Positions 777 through 42,133 of a DNA stretch of 64,000 bases are shown here, in pieces. The stretch spans positions 1 to 64,000 of the forward strand of contig JBLDXI010000034.1 of assembly GCA_047495785.1 (NCBI GenBank), read 5' to 3'. The translations under genes were made by a program, and so were the position numbers. Under the pieces are notes generated by a model. That model was not told the origin of the DNA and searched no databases. It was given only the letters and a program-made list of their open reading frames with translations. Position 1 is the first letter of the stretch. Every line of letters starts with the position of its first letter. The stretch comes from Lepidodermella squamata (taxonomy: Eukaryota > Animalia > Gastrotricha).

Positions 777-2459
777 TATCACACACAAAAAGCTTGGAAA
801 TAATAGTGAATAAAGTTAAATCAAAAAGCGTAGAATGAGCATTTATTGAAAAACATGTTTTGATGTTTGAGAAGGTGGCGCGTGGCTATTTTTTCAGGCA
901 CGCGGAACTGATTTCAATTGTAGGCGACCAATTTTGTGTAGTCGTAGTTTTTGTAAACAATTTTCATTCATCAACATCTATTTTCATTCATGGGAATACG
1001 CCCTAGCAAGAACCACCTACTACGTTCGTTCAAAAATAGCAGATAATGAGCAGATGAAAAAATGCAAAATCAAATTCGATTCACATTATTATGACGGACT
1101 TGGGGAGAATCGATTGCAACAACTGGGGCACACTAATGAATATTCAGAGTAGTATGCACAATTCGATTATCACCCGGACAGCAAGGTTTTATCTTCCACG
1201 CATATGAAATGGCACAAATTTTTTAATGACTGTTAATAGAACTAGTCGCCAATTCCAACATGGTTCGGCTTATATTCACGTCACATTATGAAAAATTATT
1301 ATAAATTATTACAGATATTATAAAAACACGTATCCCTACCGTACTGATTCTTCTACATCGGCTCGATTTTGGCGCGCAATCCACCAATTCCATCAAATCT
1401 TCATACAACACGCGCACACATACGCACCCCGCGCGGCGACTGAGTCGTGTTTTACAGCCGAGGGCCGAGGGATCAAGGGATTATCTGTGTTCGAGTTTAG
1501 TCGCCGGTCGTCGGAGTAACACGCCGGTTTAGTACTAGCTGCTTGAAGAGCTATGGACCGCGTCCGGTCATTAAACTGGGTCGCGCTTCGCGCTACATAC
1601 AGCTACAACAATAAATCAACAGCTACAACTTGTCCTAGGATTTTTTTTAAGAAATCAGCAATTTGCGATATAATTATCTATGATCTATTTGTATGCTATA
1701 TGACGAGCTATCCCCCAGAATAACTGAGAACCGTCAAGCGTTTTCGGCCCTTTCTTATATTTGAAACAAGTATCCGTTTTTTAAACATTTTAATTTTAAT
1801 TTTTTAAATGTCAATAATTAAAAACTGCTGAGAATTAGTTTGCGCTATTTCGGCCTGAGGAATGTTGGTCCAGAAGTAATCTAGGCATTTCTCAAAACCG
1901 GGTCGGGTTACCATTCAAGTGCAGCCAGGTCGTATAGCGAAGTCACCAAACGCGCCAGCAAATTTTACCGACGACTTTTTTACATTCTTCAACCGTCGCG
2001 GCCTCCAGTGTTCACCACGGCCGAGGCACGCCGTCTCCTGTGACGCCCGGGCGCAGCTATGCTCGCACTGCTGCAACGACGCCGCCGCCGCCTGCTCACC
2101 CATCGGCGCCTCTCTCCGGGTAGCACTCGGCTGCCTAGCTCAGTGTGGCCGTTGCCGGATGCACTAGCACTGATGCAGTGGAATCCCCAAGGTGCTAACG
2201 GAAAGCCTGTTGAAGTTAGTTACTTGGCTGAAAATGTTGATGCGCTCTTTGTTTTTCCTCTCTGAAACCTATTTCTTCCCCCTCTCCTCTGCTTTTTCCA
2301 TCGCTACGCCGTGTTTAGATGTGACAGGGAGCAAGCCCCGGACGATCTGCTGTATCGTGGCTCCTGTGGCGGCTCTGCTTTGCAAATCTGTGCAAGATCG
2401 TGCACGGATCTTTGATGGATCTTGGCAAGTTCAGCTAAGATCTTGCCAAGATTTGATCC

Positions 2460-3530
2460 CTAGGGCCACAGCGTCCGTTGAAATCCTCGGCGATTGGCCC
2501 GAGTTGTATCGAACCGCGGGGTGGGGTCGGGAAGAGGCAGCAAACGACGAGCCCCGATCACGGGTATTTCGAGGCGTAGCGAAGTGCTGAAGTGGTCGCT
2601 GCTGAGGCGGTCACCCACGGCCCACGGTAACTCCCCCTTTAAGAAACTGTAAAGCGGCGTCATTGACCACCCAAACATCCATGGTCGAGAGAGAGCCAGT
2701 GCGGAGATCGATGTGAGTCGGGGCGGGCTTGAGGATGGTGAGACCGAGCCGGGTAACCATGTGATGTAGATGATAACCGTGTAGATTCCAGTGGTCAGCT
2801 TCACTCCACAGAGAAGACTTAGCGTTCAGATCGCCGCCGAAAACACAGGGCGTGCGGGACGTGTTGGCCTCTTCAAACTCATGCTCTAGGAACCGCAAAT
2901 CCAAGTCGGAGGATGGCGGGGCAATAGCCAGTAACCAATCGAACCACAGGAGAACGAGGGTCGGGAATAACATCAATACGCAGCCACTCACTGCACCTCC
3001 GGCCAGACAGCGGCATCTTACGTTCCCGAACGACGCTGACGCCTTCACGGACTAAGAAAGCAGAGCCGCCACAGGAGCCACGATACAGCAGATCGTCCGG
3101 GGCTTGCTCCCTGTCACATCTAAACACGGCGTAGCGATGGAAAAAGCAGAGGAGAGGGGGAAGAAATAGGTTTCAGAGAGGAAAAACAAAGAGCGCATCA
3201 ACATTTTCAGCCAAGTAACTAACTTCAACAGGCTTTCCGTTAGCACCTTGGGGATTCCACTGCATCAGTGCTAGTGCATCCGGCAACGGCCACACTGAGC
3301 TAGGCAGCCGAGTGCTACCCGGAGAGAGGCGCCGATGGGTGAGCAGGCGGCGGCGGCGTCGTTGCAGCAGTGCGAGCATAGCTGCGCCCGGGCGTCACAG
3401 GAGACGGCGTGCCTCGGCCGTGGTGAACACTGGAGGCCGCGACGGTTGAAGAATGTAAAAAAGTCGTCGGTAAAATTTGCTGGCGCGTTTGGTGACTTCG
3501 CTATACGACCTGGCTGCACTTGAATGGTAA
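2460..3530 (-). mobile_element. LINE fragment (ORF1 end + APE endonuclease start, frameshifted), related to the LINE at 37.4-42.4 kb
   Basis: QWNPQGANGK, LSETYFF, GGDLNAKSSLW, GSLSTMDVWVVNDAA, SSDHF match ORF2 at 39259 (QWNCRGGNDK, GGDLNAKSPLW, SLSTLDVWVLNDAA, TSDHF). Its 5' part is mirrored at ~1908-2381. Confidence 0.85.
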
Positions 3531-3858
3531 CCCGACCCGGTTTTGAGAAATGCCTAGATTACTTCTGGACCAACATTCCTCAGGCCGAAATAGCGCAAAC
3601 TAATTCTCAGCAGTTTTTAATTATTGACATTTAAAAAATTAAAATTAAAATGTTTAAAAAACGGATACTTGTTTCAAATATAAGAAAGGGCCGAAAACGC
3701 TTGACGGTTCTCAGTTATTCTGGGGGATAGCTCGTCATATAGCATACAAATAGATCATAGATAATTATATCGCAAATTGCTGATTTCTTAAAAAAAATCC
3801 TAGGACAAGTTGTAGCTGTTGATTTATTGTTGTAGCTGTATGTAGCGCGAAGCGCGAC

Positions 3859-6241
3859 CCAGTTTAATGACCGGACGCGGTCCATAGCTCTTCAAGCAGC
3901 TAGTACTAAACCGGCGTGTTACTCCGACGACCGGCGACTAAACTCGAACACAGATAATCCCTTGATCCCTCGGCCCTCGGCTGTAAAACACGACTCAGTC
4001 GCCGCGCGGGGTGCGTATGTGTGCGCGTGTTGTATGAAGATTTGATGGAATTGGTGGATTGCGCGCCAAAATCGAGCCGATGTAGAAGAATCAGTACGGT
4101 AGGGATACGTGTTTTTATAATATCTGTAATAATTTATAATAATTTTTCATAATGTGACGTGAATATAAGCCGAACCATGTTGGAATTGGCGACTAGTTCT
4201 ATTAACAGTCATTAAAAAATTTGTGCCATTTCATATGCGTGGAAGATAAAACCTTGCTGTCCGGGTGATAATCGAATTGTGCATACTACTCTGAATATTC
4301 ATTAGTGTGCCCCAGTTGTTGCAATCGATTCTCCCCAAGTCCGTCATAATAATGTGAATCGAATTTGATTTTGCATTTTTTCATCTGCTCATTATCTGCT
4401 ATTTTTGAACGAACGTAGTAGGTGGTTCTTGCTAGGGCGTATTCCCATGAATGAAAATAGATGTTGATGAATGAAAATTGTTTACAAAAACTACGACTAC
4501 ACAAAATTGGTCGCCTACAATTGAAATCAGTTCCGCGTGCCTGAAAAAATAGCCACGCGCCACCTTCTCAAACATCAAAACATGTTTTTCAATAAATGCT
4601 CATTCTACGCTTTTTGATTTAACTTTATTCACTATTATTTCCAAGCTTTTTGTGTGTGATAATGAAACCACTCTTCCTCGTCTTTTTCTTCGCAATCGAT
4701 GCGGTTCTGTGTGGCGACTGGGCTCGCTGCTTCTCCCAATTCGACGATACGTTCACGAGTTGCCGCGAATTACCTAACGGCTGTTTTAAATTGAGCGAAT
4801 ATCAGGTTAATAATTATAAATTTTTTAACCTATTGTTTTTTTTAAATTTCATCTTTTGCCAGCTTGGCGAAGGTTGGCCGGATCAATCAAAGTGCATGAA
4901 ATCGGTGAGTTCATTCTTTGATTGAGTTCTGGCTTGAGTATTAAATCGAATTATGTTATTTGCGCACAGACTGCTAGATTGTGCTACCGATTGACGACTA
5001 ATGCGGCGACATGTCGACCGGGCAGCCCTGGTTGTGCGAAAACGGACGAGATAATGGTTAGTTGAAATTGATATTTTTTCCCCAATTCTATATATTTGTG
5101 AAGAAGACCATCGACAATCTGTCTTATTTGTCGACAAAATTTTACTTTTTACCGTTCTGATTACACACAGGGCTCACAGGGTTATATCCATCCTGCGTCA
5201 AGTTGAGTGTGCGTAAAGTGGCTGCGTACATAGAGTCGTGCGTAACAGGTAACGCATGTGCAAGGCGGGCGAATGAAGTTCTATGTTGTAATTGAAAGGC
5301 TAAAATAATTCAAAATTTCCGAAATCATCAGCCCTTGGTATTTGATAGAAGTGACTTGATAGATTTCATACATCTTCTTGTACATCACTTTTTTGTCAAC
5401 TAATGAATGAAAACTTGAATGAAAACTTGAATGAAATTTTGTCTTCATCATTGGAGAATTAAGGAGAAAATTATAATAGAAGAAGAGGCGCGAGTTTTTA
5501 GACACTTTTGAAGATTTTTTCACCTGTTAAACTACCCGCGACCAAACTATCGACGATATATTTATTTGCAGCCCATACCCAGCTTTCTAGCAATATTAGT
5601 TTCATCAATTTTGCTCCTTAGGCCGACATTAGCCTATAACCGACCCTAGAAGCCGATTTACTGAAACCGCTGCAATTAGCGATGCGAAATTCGTGTTAGT
5701 TTTGCTACGCTCGCGCTATTGCTATCACTTGTGTGTACGTGTGTTGTGTGTGTGTGTTTTATCGAGGGCAATAATTTTCACTCGCCCCACCGCAAGCAGG
5801 AAAGAGGCTTTAAAAATTGATCAATTCGCCCTACTCAACCTCTTCCGGCATTAACAACGCGGACAAGTGGTGTCACTAGCTCTCTATCACCCGCCGCGCG
5901 CTGTCAGCAGGCTCGTCCGCACCTGAGGCCTTAATGTCCTGTCAGCATCCGCGCTGTTAACGCGCGTGCTAAGATTAAGAGCGCGCGATGAGAGGATTAA
6001 GTACCAACTTGAGCAGAGCGGCGTGGCGATAATCCGATCATCGGACATGGAAAATATGCATTTCAAGCGTTGAAGGTTTTGCTGCTTTTCAAATTCGAGA
6101 TGAGTAGACAGCATTATTGGCCAATTATCTCGAGTTATGCAAAACTAAAATGGCCTGAGCTGACCTCAAAACTCGCTTTTCGCGTTGAAAAAATGTATGT
6201 GAAATTACACGTTTAACATTGGAGCGGTCATGTGGTGAATA
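3859..6241 (+). repeat. Direct repeat copy 1 (2383 bp) of a tandem duplication flanking the Sola1 element
   Basis: Constant offset 7448 to copy 2 (4286->11734, 5887->13335); ends TGGTGAATA immediately before the transposon. Confidence 0.95.
4662..5056 (+). pseudogene. Duplicated exons 1-3 (signal peptide + first 4-Cys modules) of gene A, cut off by the Sola1 junction
   Basis: Identical to 12110-12504: MKPLFLVFFFAIDAVLCGDWARCFSQFDD...|LGEGWPDQSKCMKS|TARLCYRLTTNAATCRPGSPGCAKTDEIM. Confidence 0.8.
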
Positions 6242-7032
6242 CGTTCACGTCGCGGAAGAACTCGCACTTCTGAAAAAGTCCGACAGTACGTCTAGTACAG
6301 TAGGCTCATGCTGTACCGATTAGTACTGTAATATCTACCGTATAAAAAGTACTGTTTTTTCGACAGTACTTTTTCTACGGCGGGCTAGCCGTATGATTTA
6401 GTACAGCGGAATGAAACTGTAGTCTTAGTACTGTCGAGGGCAGCTGTATATGATTGTACGGTATCCAGCCGTAGTTGATAGTACGGCTTGCTGTATTTGA
6501 AAGTACGGCTTGCAGTATTTGAAAGTACAGCACAGAACTGTAGAAAAAGTACTGTCGGACTTTTCGAAATTCTGCAACGCACGACCTTATGAATTATAAC
6601 AGCCTGAAACCACACTGTTTATGACGACGCAGCTGTGCTGTTTTTTGTCTTGATATGCCGAGCAGTCGATAATTAGCAGGTAACGCACTTCGAGGGAAAG
6701 ATTGACGCGACTGGCGCCATTTCATGAATAGATATAGACGACACATTCGAATCGCCAAGCGAAAAGCCGAACCCATGTCATGGTAATAAAAGTATGCAAT
6801 CAATCAGAGCATCTCATGATACTTATATATGCATGCCCGAACGGTTCTATAATAAAAATAAAGAATATTTGCTTGACTACTTGAGACCATTGCTTTATTT
6901 TCTGGTTGGCCATACGATATTAATCAAAATACTTCCATTTCTTTCAAAATAATTTATTGCTGCCTAAGAACCGGTTTTCTCGAAATTATTTTAGATTTTT
7001 TCAGTCTCGAAATTTTTCAGAACCACAAGAAA

Positions 7033-8020
7033 ATGCCTGATTCTATTGTCAAAGTGACATTGTTTTCGGCGAAATGGGCTCGCTACGTCAAAATTAGCGA
7101 AGAATGTCAAAACGCGCTCATAGTGATAAAAGGCAAAGTTTATGCTGTCTACCGCAATTTGTTTAAAGCCGATGATTATTCCATGTTTTGGAGCGATGAA
7201 GAGCATCTGATAATCATCGAGGATGAGGATGATTTGCGACTAGCTTTCGAGTTGAACACCGGCGTTTTGAGCATCACCGTAGTTTTTGGCGAGGAACTTC
7301 AAGAAATGATGGCGGTCAAGCGTCCAACATTGTCTAATCAGGTTGATCAACTTACGAGAATGATCTCAGGTCAGCTGTTAGAAATCTTAGAAAACTAGTC
7401 GAAAATAATTGGCGTTGGTGCGAACTTTGGCCCATTTAGCCTGAGGCCTTCCTTGCTAAAATGATTAAATTTTTCTTTTTTTCATTGCTATTTCATAATT
7501 TCATTATTATACAGAACTGCAAACCGATCCGAGCAAGCAAACACCCTTTAATTCTGCTAGGAGTCTCGGCACTTTAAACCAAGTGCTACCAGCTGGCGCT
7601 GCTACGGGCCTGGAAACCGTAGTTGACCGAAAAGGGGCCCCTTACGATAAGGTGAATGAGATTCCTCTGCTGAAGCAAATAGCGGTCATAATGGACGACC
7701 GCAAGGACAAGGGTGAACTGGGATACACCCGATCGACTGTCGAAAATTTTCTCAAAATTCTTGAGGAACTTGGTTTCAACTTCAACGAAAAATTCCCAGG
7801 CCGCGATAAAACAAATGTCAAAGACAAGATGCGGGAGTTCCGCAGAAAGTGATTAAAGTCATACCTTTGTTAATTCAATTTTTGCAGGCGAGAATATAGG
7901 TATAGGTATACGCGTACTACATGCTGGTCTAAATTTGCGAGGATGATTCGAAAACGTTTTTCTGTTGATAATGTTACTGTCGCATTTTTTAGGATTTTAA
8001 CAATTATTTTCGATGGCTGA
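7033..8020 (+). CDS. Transposon accessory protein: PB1 domain + Myb/SANT-like helix-turn-helix (exons 7033-7369, 7515-7848, 7888-?; 3' end uncertain, may splice to the BED ORF)
   Basis: N-terminal IVKVTLF (basic Lys) and OPCA-like YSMFWSDEEHLIIIEDEDDLRLAFE; in-phase GT-AG join to exon 2; trihelix-like ending FPGRDKTNVKDKMREFRRKREY. Confidence 0.6.
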
Positions 8021-8432
8021 ACCGATGGCTGAACCGATGGCAGAACCGATGGCAGAACCGATGGAGGACGATGGAGATCATTCGAATGGGCAGGAAGCTG
8101 AGCCGAGATATACCCACCGGGAGTGGCTAGAGCACTGTGCGACTCTGAAGAAAAGTCAGAGATCAGCAAAAGCCAAAACCCAACGTCGCTTGTATGGGCG
8201 ATTTGTAGGTGTTAAAAAGCACCAAAATGGCTATAGGCGGCTGTGCAAGCTGTGTAGAACCAGCTTTTATGACTCTTCGGTGCTGCGAAGGCACCTTATG
8301 TGGAGCTGCAAAAAAGCCACCAAGCAGCCAACCGATGCAGAAATGAATGAGTTAATTTTTTGGTCCAAGCAAAACTACAGAACAAAACAAAACGAAGTTC
8401 CGAAAAAGAAACGAGTAGTTGAAGATAAATAA
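8013..8432 (+). CDS. BED-type zinc-finger ORF with (MAEP)4 N-terminal repeat, inside the transposon
   Basis: YGRFVGV...LCKLCRTSFYDSSVLRRHLMWSC; basic NLS-like PKKKR; AATAAA overlapping the stop. Confidence 0.6.
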   Translation: MAEPMAEPMAEPMAEPMEDDGDHSNGQEAEPRYTHREWLEHCATLKKSQRSAKAKTQRRLYGRFVGVKKHQNGYRRLCKLCRTSFYDSSVLRRHLMWSCKKATKQPTDAEMNELIFWSKQNYRTKQNEVPKKKRVVEDK

Positions 8433-8480
8433 AAGCCTTAATCTCTGTACATTTGTTTCATAGAGTATTATATCACACTA

Positions 8481-10703
8481 ATGGAATCAGACGACTTTGA
8501 ATCCGATGATCTAGCCGTTGTAGATCGTGTTCTGGGGCGAATGATGGACAATCTTGAATTGCCTTCGAGCACTGATGATAGCACTACGGTGTCTTCATTC
8601 GCCATGACCGATATTTCAAATGCTTCAAAATTGCCTAAATTTATATGGCCAGATCTGACGGAATCCGACTCGCTATTGCATGAACATGATAGTGCTGAAG
8701 CTAGCACAGTTCGAAGTTTGAACACATCAAAATCGACGCGAAGCGAAATTTTCCCGCGACTTCGACCCTTCGAATACATTGCTTGTCATTGCAAGGAGAA
8801 ATGCGCTAGTAAACTTCCCGAGGAGCAAATGCGCCGCCTGTACGATCAATTCGGCTCGAACAACATAGATGCTCGCCGGAACTTCATTATAAAATGCGTG
8901 GATCCCCGATCTTCGCAGTCGTTGCATCACTGCTTTTTCTTACCTGGTGGCGATGGGTCCGCCAGAGAAAGAGTTTGCTCGAAATTCTTTCATCGCGTTC
9001 TCGGTTTGAGTGCTCGAGGATTCGTCGAATGGACTCTAAAACACAAAGTTGGAAAACTGGGGGTTGCCTTGCCTGATGCTAGAGGCATTCAGAAAAATCC
9101 TGATGCAATTTCCAATGAGCAATTCGATCATTGCTGCAGGTCTGATGATAAAAAGTTACACGAAATGTGCGCCCATACTAATTGTTCTTTTTAAAATACA
9201 GATATATCGATAGCTATGAGCGCGCACCGGGTCACTACGTAAGAAAAAATTCGAAAAAAGTTTACATCGAAGGAAACATGACAAAGCAGGAAATGTTTGA
9301 CGGATATTTAAAATTTTGTGAAAAAACCCCGATTCTAAATAATTGTCCGCCCTTGTGTTTGAATTCATTCAAAAGAGTCTTACACGAAGCATATCCCGAG
9401 TTGTCTCTTCGCGTTCAAGTTAAGGATAAATGCTCAAAATGCAGGAAATTTTTGCTGCGTGAAAAAGAGAAAAAAATTGATGAGCGACGGCGAAAAATAT
9501 TTCACGTTCATCTTTATATGAAAAACACCGCAAGGCGAGCTTGTAACGCTGACGTTTCTATGGCTACGAAAAATTCAGACGAAGTCGTGGTCATACAACT
9601 CGACTACGAAAAAGCATTGCTCAGCCCTTCGCAAACGCCAGCGAACTATCATTTCAAGAAAATGACCACGTGGAATTGCGGTAAGATTGTTTTCGCTGGA
9701 CATTTCTTAAACTCTGTTTATTCTAAATACCTATTCTAGTCATATACGAGATGGTATCGAAAGAAGCTTACTGTTTTTTCTCCGATGAAACTGACTTGGA
9801 GCATCCAAACGGCAGCTCAGCAGGGTCCGCACTATTCATCTACATAACGAGATATCTTTCGGTCAGTCATCCGCGCTGCAAGACGCTGATAGTTTACTCC
9901 GATAATGGGACTGGAAATCATAGTCAATATTTCGCCAATGCCATCATGTTTGCGTTGCAAAATGGGCAAACTTCGCTGAAATCGATTCATCATAAATTCT
10001 TTCAGCCAAATCACACAATGATGGTGGTTGACTGCTGCCACTCGTAAGAATTTTTTATTTTACTTAGTTTTTGCAAGAATTTTAGTAACATAGGCTGATT
10101 GAGAGGAGGGCAAGCCGGCATCAGGTATTTGTACCAGAAGATTGGCGTGAAATAGCCCGTTTATGTCGACCCTCTCAGCCATTCATAATTCACAACTTGA
10201 CCTGGGACCAAATGCTCAATTTTCACGGTGAGCCGAACTTCACCGCAAAACTCAGAAAGCCAAAGAATTGGAAGTCGACTAACAATTCGAATCGCGACTT
10301 CTTCGGCATTGGTGAGCGTCCATCCACCCAGAGTGACTATCTACCCTGGTCTGAAGGGGTTTGGTTTTGGTACGAAAAGGGGCACCCATCCACCCTACGC
10401 GTTCGTGACGGATACGAATCCTTATGGCCCTGGAAGACTTACTCCCTATCAACGCAAGCCAAAAAGAGCATTCCGGCTGGTGCACCTACTCTGGCAATGA
10501 CCAGCCCCCTGGCGATATCTTATAGCTTAAAGGCTGATCTGTTGCAAATGTTAAGGGCCGAAATTATTCCGCTGCGACACTCTGATTACATTCTTAACTT
10601 GCCCTATAAAATGTGGAATGGAAAGCCGAATGAGTACCGAGCAATATTTAATAACTTCGGAAAGCGCCAAAATATAATGGAATATGATTCTGATTTTGAT
10701 TGA
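8481..10703 (+). CDS. Sola1-family DDD transposase, 4 exons (8481-9139, 9202-9680, 9740-10043, 10094-10703), ~683 aa
   Basis: All three GT-AG introns join in phase. Motifs CHCKEKC, RVCSKFF, GHYVR, KDKCSKC, QLDYEK (D1), WNCVIYE, VYSDNG (D2), HKFFQPNHTMMVVDCCHSLIE (D3), VFVPEDW; AATAAA at 10742. Confidence 0.88.
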
Positions 10704-11306
10704 TCTTCAATTTGGCGTGTGATTTGACGTGATTATTCCAAAATAAAAGAAATTTCTGTACGCTAAAATAATGATGTGCGTCTAATTTGTCACTAGCTCA
10801 TTTGTCGCCGCCATGAAGTATAGCCGGCTTCCCGAACAAAAATACCAGCCTCTGAAACGATTCAAAACCGAGCATGAGTTGCAATATACAAACGCGTTCA
10901 TCACACTATCGATTATAGCCGCCATTTATCAGTAGCCATTCATACTTTGATATATTATGATATATATTCAACGATTTTAACTGTACAGCCTCTATACTGT
11001 AATTAACCGTAGATTGCTGTACAGCAGCCCCAGCTGTACATGTTAAATACAGTCATTTGCCGTACATCTATGTACAGTACACTCGACAGTACTAATAACT
11101 ACGGCATTTGGCAGTACTTGTCAGTACAGTGTGATTACAGTATGCTAATGTACGGCCGGGATTTACTGTACAAATACTACAGCTGTAATACCGTACAAAA
11201 AATACTGTCGAGATGCGCTGTACGAAAAATACAGTCAACGAAGCTGTACACGACAGTACTGTAATCAGAAAAAAAAACCGAAGTGCGAGTTCTTCCGCGA
11301 CGTGAA

Positions 11307-13689
11307 CCAGTTTAATGACCGGACGCGGTCCATAGCTCTTCAAGCAGCTAGTACTAAACCGGCGTGTTACTCCGACGACCGGCGACTAAACTCGAACACA
11401 GATAATCCCTTGATCCCTCGGCCCTCGGCTGTAAAACACGACTCAGTCGCCGCGCGGGGTGCGTATGTGTGCGCGTGTTGTATGAAGATTTGATGGAATT
11501 GGTGGATTGCGCGCCAAAATCGAGCCGATGTAGAAGAATCAGTACGGTAGGGATACGTGTTTTTATAATATCTGTAATAATTTATAATAATTTTTCATAA
11601 TGTGACGTGAATATAAGCCGAACCATGTTGGAATTGGCGACTAGTTCTATTAACAGTCATTAAAAAATTTGTGCCATTTCATATGCGTGGAAGATAAAAC
11701 CTTGCTGTCCGGGTGATAATCGAATTGTGCATACTACTCTGAATATTCATTAGTGTGCCCCAGTTGTTGCAATCGATTCTCCCCAAGTCCGTCATAATAA
11801 TGTGAATCGAATTTGATTTTGCATTTTTTCATCTGCTCATTATCTGCTATTTTTGAACGAACGTAGTAGGTGGTTCTTGCTAGGGCGTATTCCCATGAAT
11901 GAAAATAGATGTTGATGAATGAAAATTGTTTACAAAAACTACGACTACACAAAATTGGTCGCCTACAATTGAAATCAGTTCCGCGTGCCTGAAAAAATAG
12001 CCACGCGCCACCTTCTCAAACATCAAAACATGTTTTTCAATAAATGCTCATTCTACGCTTTTTGATTTAACTTTATTCACTATTATTTCCAAGCTTTTTG
12101 TGTGTGATAATGAAACCACTCTTCCTCGTCTTTTTCTTCGCAATCGATGCGGTTCTGTGTGGCGACTGGGCTCGCTGCTTCTCCCAATTCGACGATACGT
12201 TCACGAGTTGCCGCGAATTACCTAACGGCTGTTTTAAATTGAGCGAATATCAGGTTAATAATTATAAATTTTTTAACCTATTGTTTTTTTTAAATTTCAT
12301 CTTTTGCCAGCTTGGCGAAGGTTGGCCGGATCAATCAAAGTGCATGAAATCGGTGAGTTCATTCTTTGATTGAGTTCTGGCTTGAGTATTAAATCGAATT
12401 ATGTTATTTGCGCACAGACTGCTAGATTGTGCTACCGATTGACGACTAATGCGGCGACATGTCGACCGGGCAGCCCTGGTTGTGCGAAAACGGACGAGAT
12501 AATGGTTAGTTGAAATTGATATTTTTTCCCCAATTCTATATATTTGTGAAGAAGACCATCGACAATCTGTCTTATTTGTCGACAAAATTTTACTTTTTAC
12601 CGTTCTGATTACACACAGGGCTCACAGGGTTATATCCATCCTGCGTCAAGTTGAGTGTGCGTAAAGTGGCTGCGTACATAGAGTCGTGCGTAACAGGTAA
12701 CGCATGTGCAAGGCGGGCGAATGAAGTTCTATGTTGTAATTGAAAGGCTAAAATAATTCAAAATTTCCGAAATCATCAGCCCTTGGTATTTGATAGAAGT
12801 GACTTGATAGATTTCATACATCTTCTTGTACATCACTTTTTTGTCAACTAATGAATGAAAACTTGAATGAAAACTTGAATGAAATTTTGTCTTCATCATT
12901 GGAGAATTAAGGAGAAAATTATAATAGAAGAAGAGGCGCGAGTTTTTAGACACTTTTGAAGATTTTTTCACCTGTTAAACTACCCGCGACCAAACTATCG
13001 ACGATATATTTATTTGCAGCCCATACCCAGCTTTCTAGCAATATTAGTTTCATCAATTTTGCTCCTTAGGCCGACATTAGCCTATAACCGACCCTAGAAG
13101 CCGATTTACTGAAACCGCTGCAATTAGCGATGCGAAATTCGTGTTAGTTTTGCTACGCTCGCGCTATTGCTATCACTTGTGTGTACGTGTGTTGTGTGTG
13201 TGTGTTTTATCGAGGGCAATAATTTTCACTCGCCCCACCGCAAGCAGGAAAGAGGCTTTAAAAATTGATCAATTCGCCCTACTCAACCTCTTCCGGCATT
13301 AACAACGCGGACAAGTGGTGTCACTAGCTCTCTATCACCCGCCGCGCGCTGTCAGCAGGCTCGTCCGCACCTGAGGCCTTAATGTCCTGTCAGCATCCGC
13401 GCTGTTAACGCGCGTGCTAAGATTAAGAGCGCGCGATGAGAGGATTAAGTACCAACTTGAGCAGAGCGGCGTGGCGATAATCCGATCATCGGACATGGAA
13501 AATATGCATTTCAAGCGTTGAAGGTTTTGCTGCTTTTCAAATTCGAGATGAGTAGACAGCATTATTGGCCAATTATCTCGAGTTATGCAAAACTAAAATG
13601 GCCTGAGCTGACCTCAAAACTCGCTTTTCGCGTTGAAAAAATGTATGTGAAATTACACGTTTAACATTGGAGCGGTCATGTGGTGAATA
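11307..13689 (+). repeat. Direct repeat copy 2 (2383 bp)
   Basis: Identical to 3859-6241 and begins at the right TIR. Confidence 0.95.
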
Positions 13690-37669: not shown

Positions 37670-39265
37670 ATGGCCGGCAATAAAGGCGGGAAGAAGAAGA
37701 AGAAGGCAGCTCCTACACTTTCCCTGTTCAAGGCTCTGAGGGGCCTGGACGCTGCTGACATCGCCAATGTGCTGAAGATGATCGCGGCGCTCAAGGCCGC
37801 AAAGGGTTGCCCGGAGACTCTCTCGGTTAGTGGCGAGGTCCACATGGACTCGGCTGACGAGAGTGGCGACGAGCCACCTACGCTCACCTATGCTGGCGCG
37901 GCCACGTCCACGGCCTCGTCTCAGCGCCCGTCGTCGCACCCGGCGACCCCTGACCCTCGTGTTAAGCCGCCGCCCCAAGGCGCTCCACCTGCGGGTGCTG
38001 CCCCTGCTCCGTCCACTGCTGCCAACACCGGTTCTTTCCGCACTGTCATAATCGATGGAATACACGGCATTCGACGGAACGAACTTGAGCCCAAACTCTA
38101 CGAGGCTGTCGCCTGGCTTCGGCCCGAAACCGTTGTTGTCATGGCTAGTGGTGGCTTGCGTATCATCTGTAAAACCCCCGCTGATGCTCAGCGCCTTCTC
38201 GACCGCGATGGGTTCGCTCCTGAGGCCTTTCGTGGCTCCGCATTTCGCGTCCACCGCCCCGGCCAGCCAGACCCTAAGGCTGCTAAGTCCAAGCAAGCTG
38301 ACAAGGACAGTCGTTCGGTGATCACTGCCCGGCTGCCTGGGTTCTATACCACCGACCAGCTTCTGAAGCACCTGACGAACGTCGTCGAAATTCGTGACAT
38401 GCCAGTTCACACCCCCGGCGATGACCCGCTCCGCGTCGTCGTCCTCAAGTCACAAGCGTTACGCGACGAGGCTCTCACCCTCGGCCTCGAGTTCCTGAAT
38501 CGCCGTATCAAGTGCCGCCCTCTCAAGGACGGCCTCCTTCCGCCTAAGTGTATGCGCTGCGCCCGGTTTGGGCACGTCGAAGTTGACTGTGCTGCGGCAG
38601 AGAAAGACCTCCTGTGTGGTCGCTGCGCCTCGCCGAACCACAAAACCGCCCAGTGCGAAGCGCCGCGCGAATCCCTCGCCTGCGTCAACTGTCCGGACGG
38701 TGGCTCGCCTCGCCACTCCAGTCTCTGGCGCGGCTGTCCTCCGTTCAAGGCCGCTAAAGTGCAGGAGGCCGAGTCCCGTGCTGCCCGCGCCGAGGCGCGA
38801 CGTGCTCGTGTCGCTCGACAAAAGAAGGTCACGCCACCGACCGCGCCGCCTCAGCCCCCTCCGGGCCGCGTCTTCCGGGTTGCCACTCGCGATCTTCTCG
38901 GCTCCGCGCCGCCGCCCCCACCGCAACTCCCGCCTGTTAACCCTGCTATCCGTAACCAGTTCCAGACGCTCGACGGCGCTCGTTTGTTCGAAATGATGGA
39001 CGCCCGCCTGAAGAAGTTCGAGGAAAAGGAGGTTGCCTACGGCCAGCGTCTTCTACGGCTGGAGAACGCCTTCGTTGAGATCACGGGCCTTGTCAAGGCG
39101 GTCGTGCATGCGCCTCCCGTTCGCGCGGCTGGTGGCCCGCCGCCCCCTGCCTCAGCTCCTCCGCCGTCTCCCGTCTCGGCCCCGCGCGGGTCGTCTCGTG
39201 GCTTGCTGTTTCATATGTCCCCGGCTGCCGCGTTGCCCCCGACCGAGCCTGGATCAACATGGTAG
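37670..39265 (+). CDS. LINE ORF1p, nucleic-acid-binding protein with three zinc knuckles
   Basis: CMRCARFGHVEVDC, CGRCASPNHKTAQC, CVNC..RHSSLWRGC. Confidence 0.9.
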   Translation: MAGNKGGKKKKKAAPTLSLFKALRGLDAADIANVLKMIAALKAAKGCPETLSVSGEVHMDSADESGDEPPTLTYAGAATSTASSQRPSSHPATPDPRVKPPPQGAPPAGAAPAPSTAANTGSFRTVIIDGIHGIRRNELEPKLYEAVAWLRPETVVVMASGGLRIICKTPADAQRLLDRDGFAPEAFRGSAFRVHRPGQPDPKAAKSKQADKDSRSVITARLPGFYTTDQLLKHLTNVVEIRDMPVHTPGDDPLRVVVLKSQALRDEALTLGLEFLNRRIKCRPLKDGLLPPKCMRCARFGHVEVDCAAAEKDLLCGRCASPNHKTAQCEAPRESLACVNCPDGGSPRHSSLWRGCPPFKAAKVQEAESRAARAEARRARVARQKKVTPPTAPPQPPPGRVFRVATRDLLGSAPPPPPQLPPVNPAIRNQFQTLDGARLFEMMDARLKKFEEKEVAYGQRLLRLENAFVEITGLVKAVVHAPPVRAAGGPPPPASAPPPSPVSAPRGSSRGLLFHMSPAAALPPTEPGSTW

Positions 39266-42133
39266 ACTGTGACTTTCTGACGCAATGGAACTGCCGTGGT
39301 GGTAATGACAAAATGTTTGAATTTTATTGTGTTATTGATGATTTTAATCCGGTTGCTTTTTTGATTAACGAGTCTTTCTTCTATTCTCTTACCTCTGTCT
39401 CCCTCGACGGGTACGCGATCTTTCGTTGTGATAGGGCACAGGACTCTGCAGAAGCCTTGCTTGGTGACGCGCATGGCGGGTTGGCGATCCTGGTTCGCGA
39501 AGGGGCGGTTGTCGTCTCCGAGCGGAAGCTGGCCTTGACTGGGGCGAAGAGAAGCGAGTGGATACGCCTCGACCTGCTGCCTGGTCGCCGTTGTGAAGCA
39601 GTACGTGTGTTTACCGGCTACTGTCCGCCGTCGTCCAGTCTCGACCTGCGCTGGTTTGAGGAGGAGTTCGCTGAAGCTGCTCGTCTGGCTGTCCCGTGTT
39701 TCTTTGGCGGCGACCTGAACGCGAAATCACCACTGTGGGGGAAGGGCGACCTCTGGAACGCCAACGGCTTCTCCCTCCACCACGCCGCGACTCGGCTCGG
39801 TCTTACCGTCCTTCCGTCTCCGAAGCCGACTCATCTGCATCCCTCCTCCGGTTCGCTATCCACGCTCGATGTATGGGTGCTTAACGACGCTGCCATGCGC
39901 CTTCTGCGCGGCGGCGCTCACGTTGGCGATCGATATACCAGTGACCATTTCGTGACCTCAGTCGCTGTCGCCTTCCCAGTTGGCCGGCGGCTGCCTGCAG
40001 TCGACCCTCCCGCTCCGGATCCGTTTCCGCGGTACGAAGTCTCGCGCGCCGATCGTCTCGGTTTTTCCCGCACCTTTACTGCTAAGCTCCTTGCCATTCA
40101 GATGCCAGCTCCCGGGGACCCCTTCCCACGACTTGCCGCCTATCGCCGAGAAGTAACCAGCGCTATCGCCGAGTCCCGCGACCTTCACGTGCCCGTCTGT
40201 GCGCCGGGGCAGCTGCGACGCATCGCCATGAGCCTGGAGATGCGCAGGCTTCTTCAGGAGAAGCGGGTTCTGGAACGTGCTCTGGGCAACCACGTCGACC
40301 GCGAGCTATGCGCCCGGCTCAAAGATCTCGACGCCCGGTTCCGCGCTGCGCAGCACGCTCATCTTCTCCGTCGCGACATCGCCAATCTTCGAATGGTGGA
40401 AGCGCTGCCCAGCACCGTTACCGAGAAGCGTGGGAGCGCCTCCGCCGTCTCGACCGACACAGGCCGCCGCGTTCGGCTGGGCCCATGAAACTGGATGACG
40501 GCCGCGTCTTAGCGCCATCGCCTGAGCTCGCAGATGCTCTCCTGAGTCAGTTCGTCAAGCCGATGACGCCGTATGAAGACCCGGCTGCCGATGCTGCGAC
40601 CAGACAACGTTGGGCCGGTATAGAGCGATTCGTTTCCACCGATCCTGATCTTCAGCGTACCGATACCCTGCAGCTACCCGGCCGGGGTGAGTTCTCCGTC
40701 AGCCAGCGCATGGTGGCTGATGCAGTCGGGCGCCTCAAGCCGTTTAAGGCGCCTGGGCTGGACGGCATCAGTCCTATATTCTACAAATGGGGCGGGCCGC
40801 CGCTTCAGCGCCACCTTCGCCATCTGTTTAACCTCAGCCTCGGCTCCCGATGCGTTCTGCGCCGGAATGGAAGGAGGCTGCCGTCATCCCTGTGCCTAAA
40901 CCTAAAGCCGGTAAACCGCATGGCGCCGTCTCGTCTCAGCGGCCGATCTCGCTGCTCCCAGTTGACGGCAAGCTACTCGAATCGATCATCGCGCGCTGGT
41001 TGGGTGGGTTCCTGGAGGATCTCAGCCTGCTGCCTGACAACCAGTACGCGTTCCGTGCTCACCGATCCGCTCCGGACGTACCGCTGCGAATCGCGCACCG
41101 CGTCCACCTCGGCCGGTCGCGTAACCGTAAGGTCATCGTCGTCGGCCTTGACGTACAGGCGGCGTACGATTCCGTGTGGAGTGCCGGCCTTGCCTTCAAA
41201 CTCGCCGAACTGCCTCTACCTCGAAACCTGGCCGCCTGGCTTACCGATTTCCTGCGCGACCGGAAGCTTCAAGCGCGCGTCGCCGGCTTCCTCAGCCAGC
41301 AGCGGACTGTGAACTGCGGAGTCCCGCAAGGGTCGCCCCTGTCGCCCCTGCTGTACATCGTGTACACTGCTGACCTTCTAACTGCGCCGACTGCCCCCGG
41401 CTGTTCCCTAGACGCCTATGCTGACGATCTCACAGTCGTCGGCGAGGGTGCGAATTTCCAGGAGGCCGAACGCTGCACCCAGGCAGAGATCGATCGCATC
41501 TCGCAGTGGGCCAGCGAGTGGCGCCAGAAGTTTAATGCGTCGAAAAGCGAGGCAATGCCGTTTGCCTGGCGCTCGTACCAGACCCGTCTGCGCCTCGACG
41601 GCTCGATGATCCCTCAAGTTGCCGTGATTCGTGTCCTCGGCGTGCACCTTGACGCCAAGCTGACTTGGAAGTCGCACGTCGACCAGGTCATCAACCGCTG
41701 CACCCGGAACCTGTCCCACTTTCGCCGTATTGCCTGCACCCCTGGCCTCTCTCGCCGATGGCGTCGCACGGCCTACCTCAGCCTTGTCCGCTCCGCCGCC
41801 ACTTACGGCAACGTCGTGTTTTGTACCGCGCCCAAGAGGCAGCTGAAGCGGCTTGATGTGTTGCAGAACGACTGTCTGCGCAGCCTGCTAAACATCCGCC
41901 GCGATGACCGGGTCCGTGTCTCGGAGCTGGAACGCCGCTGTGGCGTGAAGAGCCTGCCTGCCTTTTTCGAACAGACCCAGCGCCGTTATGCTGCGAATGC
42001 AGTCCGGTTCGTCCTCCCACTTAGAGAAGAAGTTGAGCGACTCCGCCTCTCCGCGAACCCGGTGCCCCGTTCCCCGCTGGCCTTGATCGCCAGCAGGCTT
42101 CCTCGGGGTCCTTTGCCCACTTTCGATGTCTGA
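39259..42133 (+). pseudogene. LINE ORF2 (APE endonuclease + reverse transcriptase), two frameshifts (~40405, ~40855)
   Basis: QWNCRG, GDLNAK, SDHF; KAPGLDGI; WKEAAVIPVPK, RPISLL, QYAFR, LDVQAAYDSV, GVPQGSPLSP, YADD, split over three frames. Confidence 0.88.

Follow-up and report, generated by a model that had tools for sequence, protein, structure and literature searches.

A Sola1-type DNA transposon of Lepidodermella squamata with two conserved accessory genes upstream of its transposase

Results

Element structure and copies

The window, the whole stretch of 64,000 nucleotides of Lepidodermella squamata DNA that was analysed, contains a Sola1-type transposon with three genes on one strand. 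A two-exon gene for a protein of about 224 aa (gene 1) and a zinc-finger gene (gene 2) precede a transposase gene of four exons, which encodes about 683 aa (Table 1). All transposase introns are of the GT..AG type and every exon is conserved in a sister family, in agreement with a preliminary description of this DNA that had reported an intact, spliced DDD transposase downstream. The perfect terminal inverted repeats (TIRs) claimed there were also recovered; they are 28 bp long, and their pattern occurs just twice within the window, where none is expected by chance.

Table 1. Features of the transposon, with positions in the window.
Feature	Position	Strand	Description
Sola1-type transposon (family A window copy)	6243-11307		three genes, all + strand
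Left TIR	6243-6270	+	perfect 28-nt inverted repeat with 11280-11307
Left subterminal repeat field	6271-6570	.	core motif [AT]GTAC[ATC]G
Gene 1 exon 1	7033-7369	+	PB1-like domain; 112 codons + 1 base; 53% aa identity to family B
Gene 1 intron	7370-7514	+	GT..AG, phase 1; donor and acceptor conserved in family B
Gene 1 exon 2	7515-7852	+	predicted disordered linker and small helical HTH/winged-helix-like domain; stop 7850-7852
Gene 2	8013-8432	+	139 aa, one predicted C2H2-type finger with CCHC ligands; MAEP repeat at N terminus
Transposase exon 1	8481-9139	+	Cys-rich N-terminal region; 48-50% identity to family B
Transposase exon 2	9202-9680	+	first catalytic Asp (IQLDYEK); 66-67% identity to family B
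Transposase exon 3	9740-10043	+	second Asp (YSDNGTGNHS), presumed third Asp (NHTMMVVD); 76% identity to family B
Transposase exon 4	10094-10703	+	stop 10701-10703; 60-61% identity to family B
Right subterminal repeat field	10960-11279	.	same GTAC-core motif as left
Right TIR	11280-11307	-	pairs with 6243-6270

The element terminus is present at at least 20 further loci. Sister copies have a TIR of 29 bp with a terminal C...G, and their true left terminus takes in the C at 6242; the window copy has C, not G, at 11308. The window copy is without a target site duplication (TSD) and is flanked on both sides by perfect copies of its own flank, a duplicated setting that is possibly an assembly artefact. 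Mobility of the element is demonstrated by the 4-bp TSDs of sister copies, which are AT-rich. When families A and B and lineage C are pooled, six of the seven paired copies have a 4-bp TSD (ATAT, ATTT, TATT and ATAT in family A, ATAC in family B, ACCT in lineage C).

The left subterminal field comprises direct and inverted repeat families. The GTAC-core motif is found nine times at the left end (scan of 6243-6600) and 15 times at the right end (scan of 10940-11307), which gives 24 matches in about 700 bp of ends versus two in the 4360-bp interior. This enrichment is repeated in family B, with 28 matches at the ends versus one in the interior.

Family A, to which the window copy belongs, consists of two full copies, deletion derivatives and MITE-like remnants. 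The two full copies are about 17 substitutions and four indels apart over 5 kb, and the element is a young, recently active, autonomous cut-and-paste DNA transposon. Family B has at least seven copies that are 99.8-99.9% alike right to the element boundary. The non-coding parts of the two families do not align with each other; family B keeps all three genes with unchanged order and strand. In a degraded relative of family B (C4), both accessory genes survive together with part of transposase exon 1, and in an internally deleted, dead copy of lineage C the PB1-like exon alone is retained beside transposase exons 2-4. No accessory genes were seen near family D, a related Sola1-like family of the same genome, and the accessory genes are therefore not universally required. 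Outside this genome, no relative of the element was found in the searches run: the PB1-like exon had none among 1.84 billion representative proteins, and k-mer searches with transposase exon 3 and with the zinc-finger ORF gave no match. The Asp/Glu run of the PB1-like exon produced spurious matches in the protein search.

Transposase and assignment to Sola1

Sola transposons are defined by a DDD transposase and 4-bp TSDs; they measure 2-9 kb, some over 15 kb, and have TIRs of 11-1124 bp (PMC10741241). The element described here has 4-bp TSDs, TIRs of 28-29 bp, which lie inside the published range, and a Sola1-like RNase H core. For this core, block E.10 (Sola1-1_AP) from the supplement of Majorek et al. 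2014 served as reference, and the comparison was visual. LDYEKALLSP corresponds to FDLEKVLTTP, KEAYCFFSDET to KQGYCYMWDES, VYSDNGTGNHS to FYSDNCGGQNRN (with YSDNGTGNHS of exon 3 matched to YSDNCGGQNRN), and FFQPNHTMM to FLERGHTQS of Sola1-1_AP. The third catalytic Asp is likely to lie in MMVVD. Exon 3 gave no Pfam match to DUF7869 (PF25273), and the element is absent from the list of this family in the genome. The link to DUF7869 is indirect: the ESM Atlas clusters nearest to exon 3 carry this domain, and exon 3 matches DUF7869-positive loci of this genome (E=5e-10). An AATAAA signal lies about 40 nt downstream of exon 4.

Gene layout

An acceptor, consisting of a pyrimidine tract and YAG, is found 12-24 nt before each ATG in families A and B. 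In the window copy these are a CAG at 7018-7020, 12 nt ahead of gene 1, a TAG at 7990-7992, 20 nt ahead of gene 2, and a TAG at 8461-8463, which lies 17 nt before the transposase ATG and 31 nt past the stop of gene 2. Because each ATG is preceded by an acceptor and gene 2 stops so close to the acceptor of the transposase, the three cistrons may be expressed from one operon-like transcription unit. A strong leader donor, CAG/GTAA, is placed at 6679/6680 in family A and at 2051/2052 in the family B copy L063. The donor of the gene 1 intron follows a conserved RMIS/G and its acceptor precedes a conserved (E)LQT(D/E)P in both families, and beyond the donor there is no conservation between A and B. 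Splicing and expression of the genes are predicted from this conservation; the one sequencing run in which the element was found consists of DNA contigs.

First domain of gene 1

Several weak lines of evidence agree on a PB1 domain for exon 1 of gene 1. The Pfam PB1 model (PF00564) aligns with residues 43-75 only, at 12.8 bits versus a gathering cut-off of 23.6 bits (E=0.12); it does not match the family B version, and the PF00564 matches listed for the genome do not include the element. In the PDB profile search the sole match was the PB1 domain of NBR1 (E=0.87, 69 residues aligned). PB1 was found in 28 of the 30 nearest ESM Atlas clusters, with a score of 0.92 and 175-182 shared features. 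A VIA structure search of 48,161 chains placed seven PB1 domains among the top 30 at Z 3.6-4.4 (p40phox, Cdc24, NBR1, Par6, the PB1 complex 4mjs and MAP2K5), with unrelated folds interspersed and Z not above 4.6 overall. The AlphaFold2 (AF2) model, built on a three-sequence alignment, is poor (pLDDT 57); its element order, b-b-a-b-b-a-b, is that of PB1 (b1-b2-a1-b3-b4-a2-b5), and Foldseek found nothing significant with it (best E=0.6). On balance, PB1 is the most probable identity of this domain, as had been proposed for this locus: the agreement of NBR1, Atlas and VIA speaks for it, and the missed Pfam cut-off and the low pLDDT weaken it.

The acidic motif and a Lys of the kind named in the preliminary description occur in both family A and family B. 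The acidic OPCA-like motif FWSDEEHLIIIEDEDDLRLAF, corresponding to a type A face, is also conserved in lineage C; in the NBR1 PB1 domain its aligned counterpart is YSDEDgDVVALVDDNDL. Lys7 (IVKVT), the candidate b1 Lys, is invariant in A and B, and the dead copy of lineage C has Thr at this position; the residue lies in a part that the HMM does not align and that the model gives at pLDDT below 50.

Second domain of gene 1 and the zinc-finger protein

Modelling suggests that the second domain of gene 1 is winged-helix or HTH-like. The AF2 model of exon 2 has a mean pLDDT of 76, rising to about 90 across residues 40-108, and the nearest structures were winged-helix, LOTUS, TetR-type HTH and SelB-WH domains (Z not above 4.7); Pfam gave weak HTH matches alone. 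A Myb/SANT-like motif had earlier been assigned to 7640-7899, a range that overruns the stop codon of the gene. This assignment is not supported, since neither profiles nor folds matched and exon 2 has no conserved Trp residues; Pfam, searched up to E=5, and the PDB profile search both gave no match to Myb, SANT or MADF.

Gene 2 is a separate zinc-finger ORF, as described before, and its predicted finger is a single one of the classical C2H2 type with CCHC ligands rather than the BED finger that had been suggested. The four ligands C78, C81, H94 and C99 (CX2CX12HX4C) are invariant. At least 50 matches were listed in the PDB profile search, down to E=1.2e-4, and all of them are classical C2H2 fingers. 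For the family B protein Pfam gave zf-C2H2 at E=9e-4 versus zf-BED (PF02892) at E=0.1; zf-BED appeared with this version only, at 13 bits versus a cut-off of 20.6. On these grounds the BED finger is not supported.

Selection on the accessory genes

Between families A and B, the proteins of genes 1 and 2 are 48-53% identical (53% for gene 1 exon 2, 48% for gene 2), dS is saturated, and maximum-likelihood (ML) omega is 0.03-0.08: about 0.08 and 0.07 for the two exons of gene 1 and about 0.03 for gene 2. The transposase exons range from 0.01 to 0.10. Every full copy of both families has the accessory ORFs intact. All three genes are under purifying selection across lineages that have diverged to about 50% protein identity. 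Given the saturated dS and an omega of the same order as for the transposase, the accessory genes are a conserved module and not decaying captured DNA.

Since both genes have been kept under selection in diverged sister families, the Sola lineage of this genome appears to work with several proteins and not with one. The earlier proposal of a multi-gene Sola1-type element is therefore upheld, and the check it suggested, on co-retention and dN/dS of the accessory ORFs, came out in its favour. The neutral decay of a captured host fragment, which would have spoken against it, was not observed, and there is no close host paralogue.

Discussion

Our data describe an autonomous, three-cistron Sola1-type element, and we hold it to be moderately probable that the gene 1 and gene 2 proteins act in trans as cofactors of its own transposition. 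At least one of the two small proteins probably recognises the GTAC-core repeats, which families A and B have in common and which take up about 300 bp internal to either end. The PB1-like domain would probably let the gene 1 protein self-associate head to tail, and this may lead to cooperative binding along the repeat arrays. Such binding could help in pairing the ends or in recruiting the transposase, comparable to TnpA in En/Spm and to the Myb-like protein in Harbinger. A more detailed version is put forward as a speculation that we consider rather unlikely to hold in full. Here, a trans-spliced operon would supply a three-protein Sola1 machine, in which a PB1-HTH polymer on the GTAC arrays and a one-finger protein marking the termini pair the ends for the DDD transposase. 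If true, this would be the first multi-component Sola system and the first case of PB1 polymerisation in transpososome assembly.

The accessory genes may instead serve in regulating the element or in handling the host, with roles such as transposition repressor, copy-number control, anti-silencing factor or nuclear-import adaptor, and have no part in end pairing. We give this a minor but real chance. Selection shows that the genes matter to the element, not how. Family D, which is also Sola1-like, seems to do without these genes, and a transposase with its own putative DNA-binding, Cys-rich N-terminal exon may need no helper for DNA binding. Against this stand the nucleic-acid-binding-type domains predicted for both small proteins, and the dense subterminal repeats, conserved between the families, which need a reader.

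It is unlikely that the first domain of gene 1 is an unrelated small alpha/beta domain, in which an acidic stretch mimics OPCA and which would not polymerise head to tail. The sub-threshold Pfam score, the poor AF2 model, the Foldseek result, the low VIA scores among unrelated folds and the spurious matches drawn by the Asp/Glu run would all fit such a domain. However, independent methods converge on PB1 and on no other fold: NBR1 is the sole PDB sequence match, the Atlas clusters and the VIA top 30 are rich in PB1, and strands and helices are predicted in the PB1 order.

We regard it as very improbable that alternative splicing joins the upstream ORFs to the transposase, as N-terminal modules of longer isoforms. 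Their position on one strand with very short spacers, the acceptor before each ORF and the leader donor of both families would allow it, but gene 1 terminates in a stop codon in both families, and an in-frame stop lies between the acceptor and the ATG of gene 2. In family A this is a TAA at 7998-8000, which rules out a fusion of gene 2 with gene 1, and in family B a TAA just past the acceptor. Genes 2 and 3 are parted by two in-frame stops in A and by a difference of frame in B. Capture of host gene fragments in neutral decay (transduplication, as in Pack-MULEs) is scarcely credible: DNA transposons do capture host fragments, and weak pairs of PB1 and zinc finger occur elsewhere in this genome, but the ORFs are intact across two dS-saturated families at low omega, the intron is conserved, and the best non-element match to the PB1-like exon has E=0.07.

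The reading of the two proteins as transposition cofactors can be compared with known systems. The Sola superfamily, with its Sola1 group, was reportedly described by Bao et al. in 2009. With Sola1-1_AP of the pea aphid our element shares TIR-bounded cut-and-paste transposition with 4-bp TSDs and the core D-[LY]-E-K-x-L-x-x-P, YSDN-x-G and (G/N)HT. It differs in having two extra conserved genes, placed ahead of the transposase in an operon-like manner, and in the three short introns that break the transposase. In the literature covered, to which the founding Sola paper does not belong, we found no description of helper genes devoted to DNA binding, or of PB1 helpers, in a Sola element.

PIF/Harbinger is a two-protein system of a transposase and a Myb-like DNA-binding protein. 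As in our element, the transposase gene is accompanied by a co-conserved gene for a separate small protein of DNA-binding type, and the functional parallel probably lies in bringing the transposase to the ends. However, the transposase belongs to another superfamily, the helper described here is not demonstrably Myb/SANT, and our element adds a PB1-like module and a third gene, all on one strand. The short subterminal repeat arrays recall En/Spm (CACTA), where TnpA is thought to bind such repeats and to bring the ends together. In contrast, TnpA and TnpD arise by alternative splicing of one gene, and TnpA is unrelated to the proteins found here, both in sequence and in domains.

The transcription factors ARF and NLP join a DNA-binding module to PB1, whose head-to-tail contacts lead to cooperative DNA binding. 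Gene 1 joins a DNA-binding-type module to a PB1-like domain in the same manner, but its DNA-binding part is not homologous and the order is reversed, with PB1 at the N terminus. A precedent for PB1 in a DNA transposon lineage is given by the plant PB1-MULEs and MUSTANG-B, in which the domain is sporadically kept (Joly-Lopez et al. 2016, PMC4948706). There, PB1 occurs in association with MULE sequences of the plant Mutator superfamily, whereas here the element is an animal Sola1-type one and the PB1-like domain belongs to a small protein of its own, in which it is fused to an HTH-like domain.

For most cut-and-paste superfamilies of eukaryotes, a transposase alone is believed to suffice. The few known to employ a second protein (Harbinger, CACTA, MuDR) have been highly instructive about the recognition and pairing of ends. 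Two helper genes under selection in a Sola1 lineage would make a new and experimentally tractable case, in which one helper combines a probable self-associating PB1 module with a domain of DNA-binding type. As the element is young, with two near-identical full copies and a sister family of at least seven, its native proteins and ends can be tested directly. Finally, the acceptor before every ATG corresponds to the compact gene layout of the host, which the element appears to have adopted, and this bears on how mobile elements may express several proteins in trans-splicing genomes.

A mobile three-gene transposon and its copies

We have shown that the Sola1-type element of the window (family A) is a mobile three-gene transposon, all genes of which are under selection. 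It comprises 5,065 bp and carries at both ends a perfect inverted repeat of 28 nt, GTTCACGTCGCGGAAGAACTCGCACTTC, a pattern found twice in the window where none is expected by chance. Searched at the DNA level, the entire 121-Mb assembly revealed a second full-length copy on contig C42 (99% identical), an internally deleted copy on C26 (without query positions 1503-3398), a short derivative on C7 and many MITE-like ends of 77-95% identity. Family A is young, since the two full copies are only about 17 substitutions and four small indels apart. One of these indels is an additional unit, in C42, of the 12-bp tandem repeat CGATGGCTGAAC, which encodes MAEP at the start of the zinc-finger ORF.

From the flanks of all ends retrieved, the true terminus was read as C-GTTCAC...GTGAAC-G. 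Paired copies of family A are bordered by AT-rich target site duplications (TSDs) of 4 bp, namely ATAT (C42), ATTT (C26), TATT (C7) and ATAT (C4), and the TSDs of two sister lineages in the same genome are ATAC (family B) and ACCT (lineage C). The paired ends on C15 were the sole pair read with mismatching TSDs. A review citing the founding paper defines Sola by two features, a DDD transposase and TSDs of 4 bp, and gives element sizes of 2-9 kb, some above 15 kb, and terminal inverted repeats (TIRs) of 11-1124 bp (PMC10741241). The multi-gene mobile element with perfect TIRs proposed in the preliminary description is borne out by the TIR count, the TSDs of the sister copies and the selected genes.

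The window copy is flanked by direct copies of its own left flank, as 2,382 bp to the left of the element are 100% identical to the sequence on its right. At the right junction (11307|11308) the terminal G is absent and there is no TSD; the left junction is 6241|6242. The empty target site, GGTGAATA|GTTGGG, lies at 13689|13690, at the end of the second flank copy. The contig depth in one DNA run was 74-87 in the flank, about half of that in the element interior (172-195), hinting at a single-copy flank. For the published assembly of L. squamata, DNA had been amplified by multiple displacement, a method prone to chimeras (PMC11660948). As the origin of the flank duplication, a chimera from assembly or amplification is no less likely than a genuine aberrant transposition or end joining.

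The contig starts with a large perfect palindrome: 18-1578 and 3860-5420 are reverse complements, and its arms continue toward a centre near 2400-3040. By its appearance it is either a foldback artefact or a genuine inverted duplication. The window also carries LINE-type retrotransposon ORFs with endonuclease (Exo_endo_phos) and reverse transcriptase (RVT_1) domains.

Coordinates of the element, its genes and related loci (without prefix, window positions; C, contigs of the assembly; L, extracted loci)
Feature	Location	Strand	Basis or remark
Element (family A)	6243-11307
Gene 1, PB1-like exon	7033-7369	+
Gene 1, HTH-like exon	7515-7852	+
Gene 2, zinc-finger ORF	8013-8432	+
MAEP repeat	8011-8070
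Transposase exon 1 (gene 3)	8481-9139	+	ORF and splice signals
Transposase exon 2	9202-9680	+	ORF and splice signals
Transposase exon 3	9740-10043	+	ORF and splice signals
Transposase exon 4	10094-10703	+	ORF and splice signals
Identical flank copies	3860-6241; 11308-13689		direct
Palindrome	18-2400; about 3040-5420
LINE-type ORFs	39259-42133
Exon 3 and DUF7869 coincident	C24:1331004-1331342; C102:55286-55666; C19:383002-383379; C34:1209952-1210113		C34: DUF7869 E=0.86
Family D, example	C30:1078901-1079188	-
Family D, example	C42:586207-586494	-
Family D, example	C34:67131-67406	+	just beyond the window
PB1 and zinc-finger match	C15:323799-324218	-	within one 517-aa open frame
PB1 and zinc-finger match	C4:2780754-2781173	-
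PB1 and zinc-finger match	C31:305083-306939	-
PB1 and zinc-finger match	C11:927793-928297	+
Weak host PB1-like match	C33:1937543
Relic	L032 2580-3106 (C15:787580-788106)		HTH exon and zinc-finger ORF
Element interrupted by family B	L063 1514-1637; 7032-7156		TSD ATAC

The transposase

The four transposase exons are separated by GT..AG introns of 50-62 bp and predict a protein of about 683 aa. All searches, fold models and dN/dS estimates of this study were made exon by exon, the spliced proteins never being joined. The exon-wise search gave no Pfam match for the transposase, in line with the stated absence of Pfam coverage for Sola (PMC5751038). Compared by eye, and unscored, blocks of the element resemble the RNase H core of Sola1-1_AP, a reference element printed in the supplement of Majorek et al. 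2014, clearly better than the adjacent Sola2 block. The corresponding blocks (Sola1-1_AP/element) are FDLEKVLTTP/LDYEKALLSP, KQGYCYMWDES/KEAYCFFSDET, FYSDNCGGQNRN/VYSDNGTGNHS and FLERGHTQS/FFQPNHTMM, and we infer that the third catalytic Asp is the one in MMVVD.

The ESM Atlas clusters closest to exon 3 bear the Pfam domain DUF7869 (score 0.94). A genome search with the DUF7869 HMM did not reach the element. Exon 3 matches three DUF7869-positive loci in the genome (E=5e-10 to 2e-5) and overlaps a fourth with a weak DUF7869 match. Since the genomic matches of both coincide, Sola1-type transposases probably have DUF7869 as their RNase H core. The homologous-protein search with exon 3, whose length window excludes full-length transposases, was blank.

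Conservation and selection of the accessory genes

Family B was found by searching the genome with each of the upstream ORFs. It has at least seven copies, which are 99.8-99.9% identical as far as the element boundary. Its gene content, taken from one fully read copy (L063), consists of the PB1-like exon, the HTH exon, the zinc-finger ORF and the transposase, with gene order and strand as in family A. Amino acid identities between the families are 53%, 53% and 48% for the three accessory parts and 48%, 66%, 76% and 60% for transposase exons 1-4 (tblastn). The TIRs of the two families are homologous, that of family B being CGTTCGTGGCGCGGAAGAACCAGCACTTT, and the non-coding DNA does not align anywhere. 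The gene 1 intron is conserved in phase 1, with the donor right after the invariant ...LTRMIS|G and the acceptor before (E)LQT(D/E)P; the sequence read past the donor is unconserved between the families. A degraded family B relative on C4 retains both accessory genes along with a portion of transposase exon 1, and an internally deleted third lineage on C58 (locus L065) retains the PB1 exon.

Synonymous sites between the two families are saturated (dN 0.35-0.46, maximum likelihood), which makes the omega values rough, yet they are far below 1: 0.08 for the PB1-like exon, 0.07 for the HTH exon, 0.03 for the zinc finger and 0.01-0.10 for the transposase exons. With such values, the reading as neutrally decaying captured fragments can be rejected. 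Elsewhere in the genome, no PB1-like match was better than E=0.07. Loss, decay or host capture of the accessory ORFs had been named beforehand as evidence against a helper system; we found them intact in the other intact copies and without a close host paralogue.

A relic among ordinary host genes, 60-73% identical to family A, retains nothing but the HTH exon, with a broken frame, and a zinc-finger ORF of 73 codons. The fully read family B copy is itself inserted into an inverted-repeat element with CATCCCGCA-type repeats.

Domains of the accessory proteins

The first exon of gene 1 probably encodes a PB1 domain, as had been proposed, and several weak lines of evidence agree on this. With E up to 10 allowed, a profile of the A/B alignment matched one PDB entry only, the PB1 domain of NBR1 from a plant (E=0.87), over 69 residues and with a one-residue gap where expected in the b3-b4 hairpin. 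PB1 families account for 28 of the 30 closest ESM Atlas clusters (score 0.92, 175-182 shared features), and an exhaustive VIA search (Z <=4.6) placed seven different PB1 domains among the top 30 of 48,161 chains. On the other hand, the Pfam PB1 match (E=0.12) covers the OPCA region only and scores 12.8 bits, below the cut-off of 23.6. AlphaFold2 with three sequences yielded a weak model (pLDDT 57) in which the order of strands and helices is that of PB1; Foldseek found no significant match to this model in the PDB. The acidic motif and Lys7 are invariant between families A and B. A homodimer prediction scored 0.00 and gives no verdict either way.

In a set of 1.84 billion representative proteins we found no relatives of the PB1-like exon, so that the module may be lineage-restricted. 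Four matches of the PB1 profile in this set were spurious, being repetitive bacterial proteins drawn in via an Asp-rich run.

The second domain of gene 1 was modelled well (pLDDT about 90, residues 40-108). Although it had been described as Myb/SANT-like, no such signal was obtained in Pfam or PDB profile searches; instead, the fold shows weak similarity to helix-turn-helix folds of the winged-helix, LOTUS, TetR and SelB types (Z <=4.7, TM <0.45), and Foldseek returned no significant PDB match. The assignment of a BED finger to gene 2 is likewise unsupported. Its ligands C78, C81, H94 and C99 are invariant (CX2CX12HX4C), the PDB matches are exclusively classical C2H2 fingers (best E=1.2e-4), and in Pfam zf-BED (E=0.1) is weaker than zf-C2H2 (E=9e-4). 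The homologous-protein search with this ORF was blank.

At four other loci, a weak Pfam PB1 match is accompanied, on the same strand, by a weak match to the zinc-finger ORF, and no Sola1-like transposase match is adjacent to any of these loci. They may represent donors, domesticated copies or further transposon families.

Element ends and gene expression

The motif [AT]GTAC[ATC]G has 24 occurrences in the approximately 700 bp just inside both TIRs, against two in the interior of 4,360 bp; the corresponding counts in family B are 28 and one. Being common to two families that are otherwise unalignable outside coding DNA, this repeat is likely a protein-binding site.

Judging from sequence signals, the three cistrons might be expressed as an operon. 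In both families a pyrimidine tract and a YAG acceptor precede every ATG, at distances of 12, 20 and 17 nt for genes 1, 2 and 3 of family A and 14, 18 and 24 nt for those of family B. The leader of both contains a CAG|GTAA donor. The single sequencing run found consists of DNA contigs, and no splice joints appeared in it. One AATAAA overlaps the stop codon of gene 2, 31 nt upstream of the transposase acceptor, and another lies downstream of the transposase stop codon. In-frame stops speak against fusion isoforms of the upstream ORFs with the transposase.

Possible roles of the accessory proteins

Second DNA-binding proteins are known in other transposon superfamilies. In a literature search that did not include the founding paper (Bao et al. 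2009), no Sola element was described as having helper genes of its own, and nothing usable emerged on Sola in combination with PB1, on DUF7869 or on genes carried as Sola cargo. An association of PB1 with transposons has a precedent in plants, the PB1-MULEs (PMC4948706).

By analogy with the Myb-like protein of Harbinger, TnpA of En/Spm and PB1-bearing transcription factors, we infer a direct role in transposition, in which one or both of the proteins encoded by genes 1 and 2 would bind the element ends, and PB1 contacts would lead to cooperative assembly or pairing. A serious alternative is that the accessory proteins act in regulation or on the host. This is favoured by family D, a related Sola1-like family of the same genome with at least 20 copies. 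Its exon 3 identity is 41% and its open frame, of up to 636 aa, lacks introns; the surroundings of its loci gave no matches to the PB1, HTH or zinc-finger parts.
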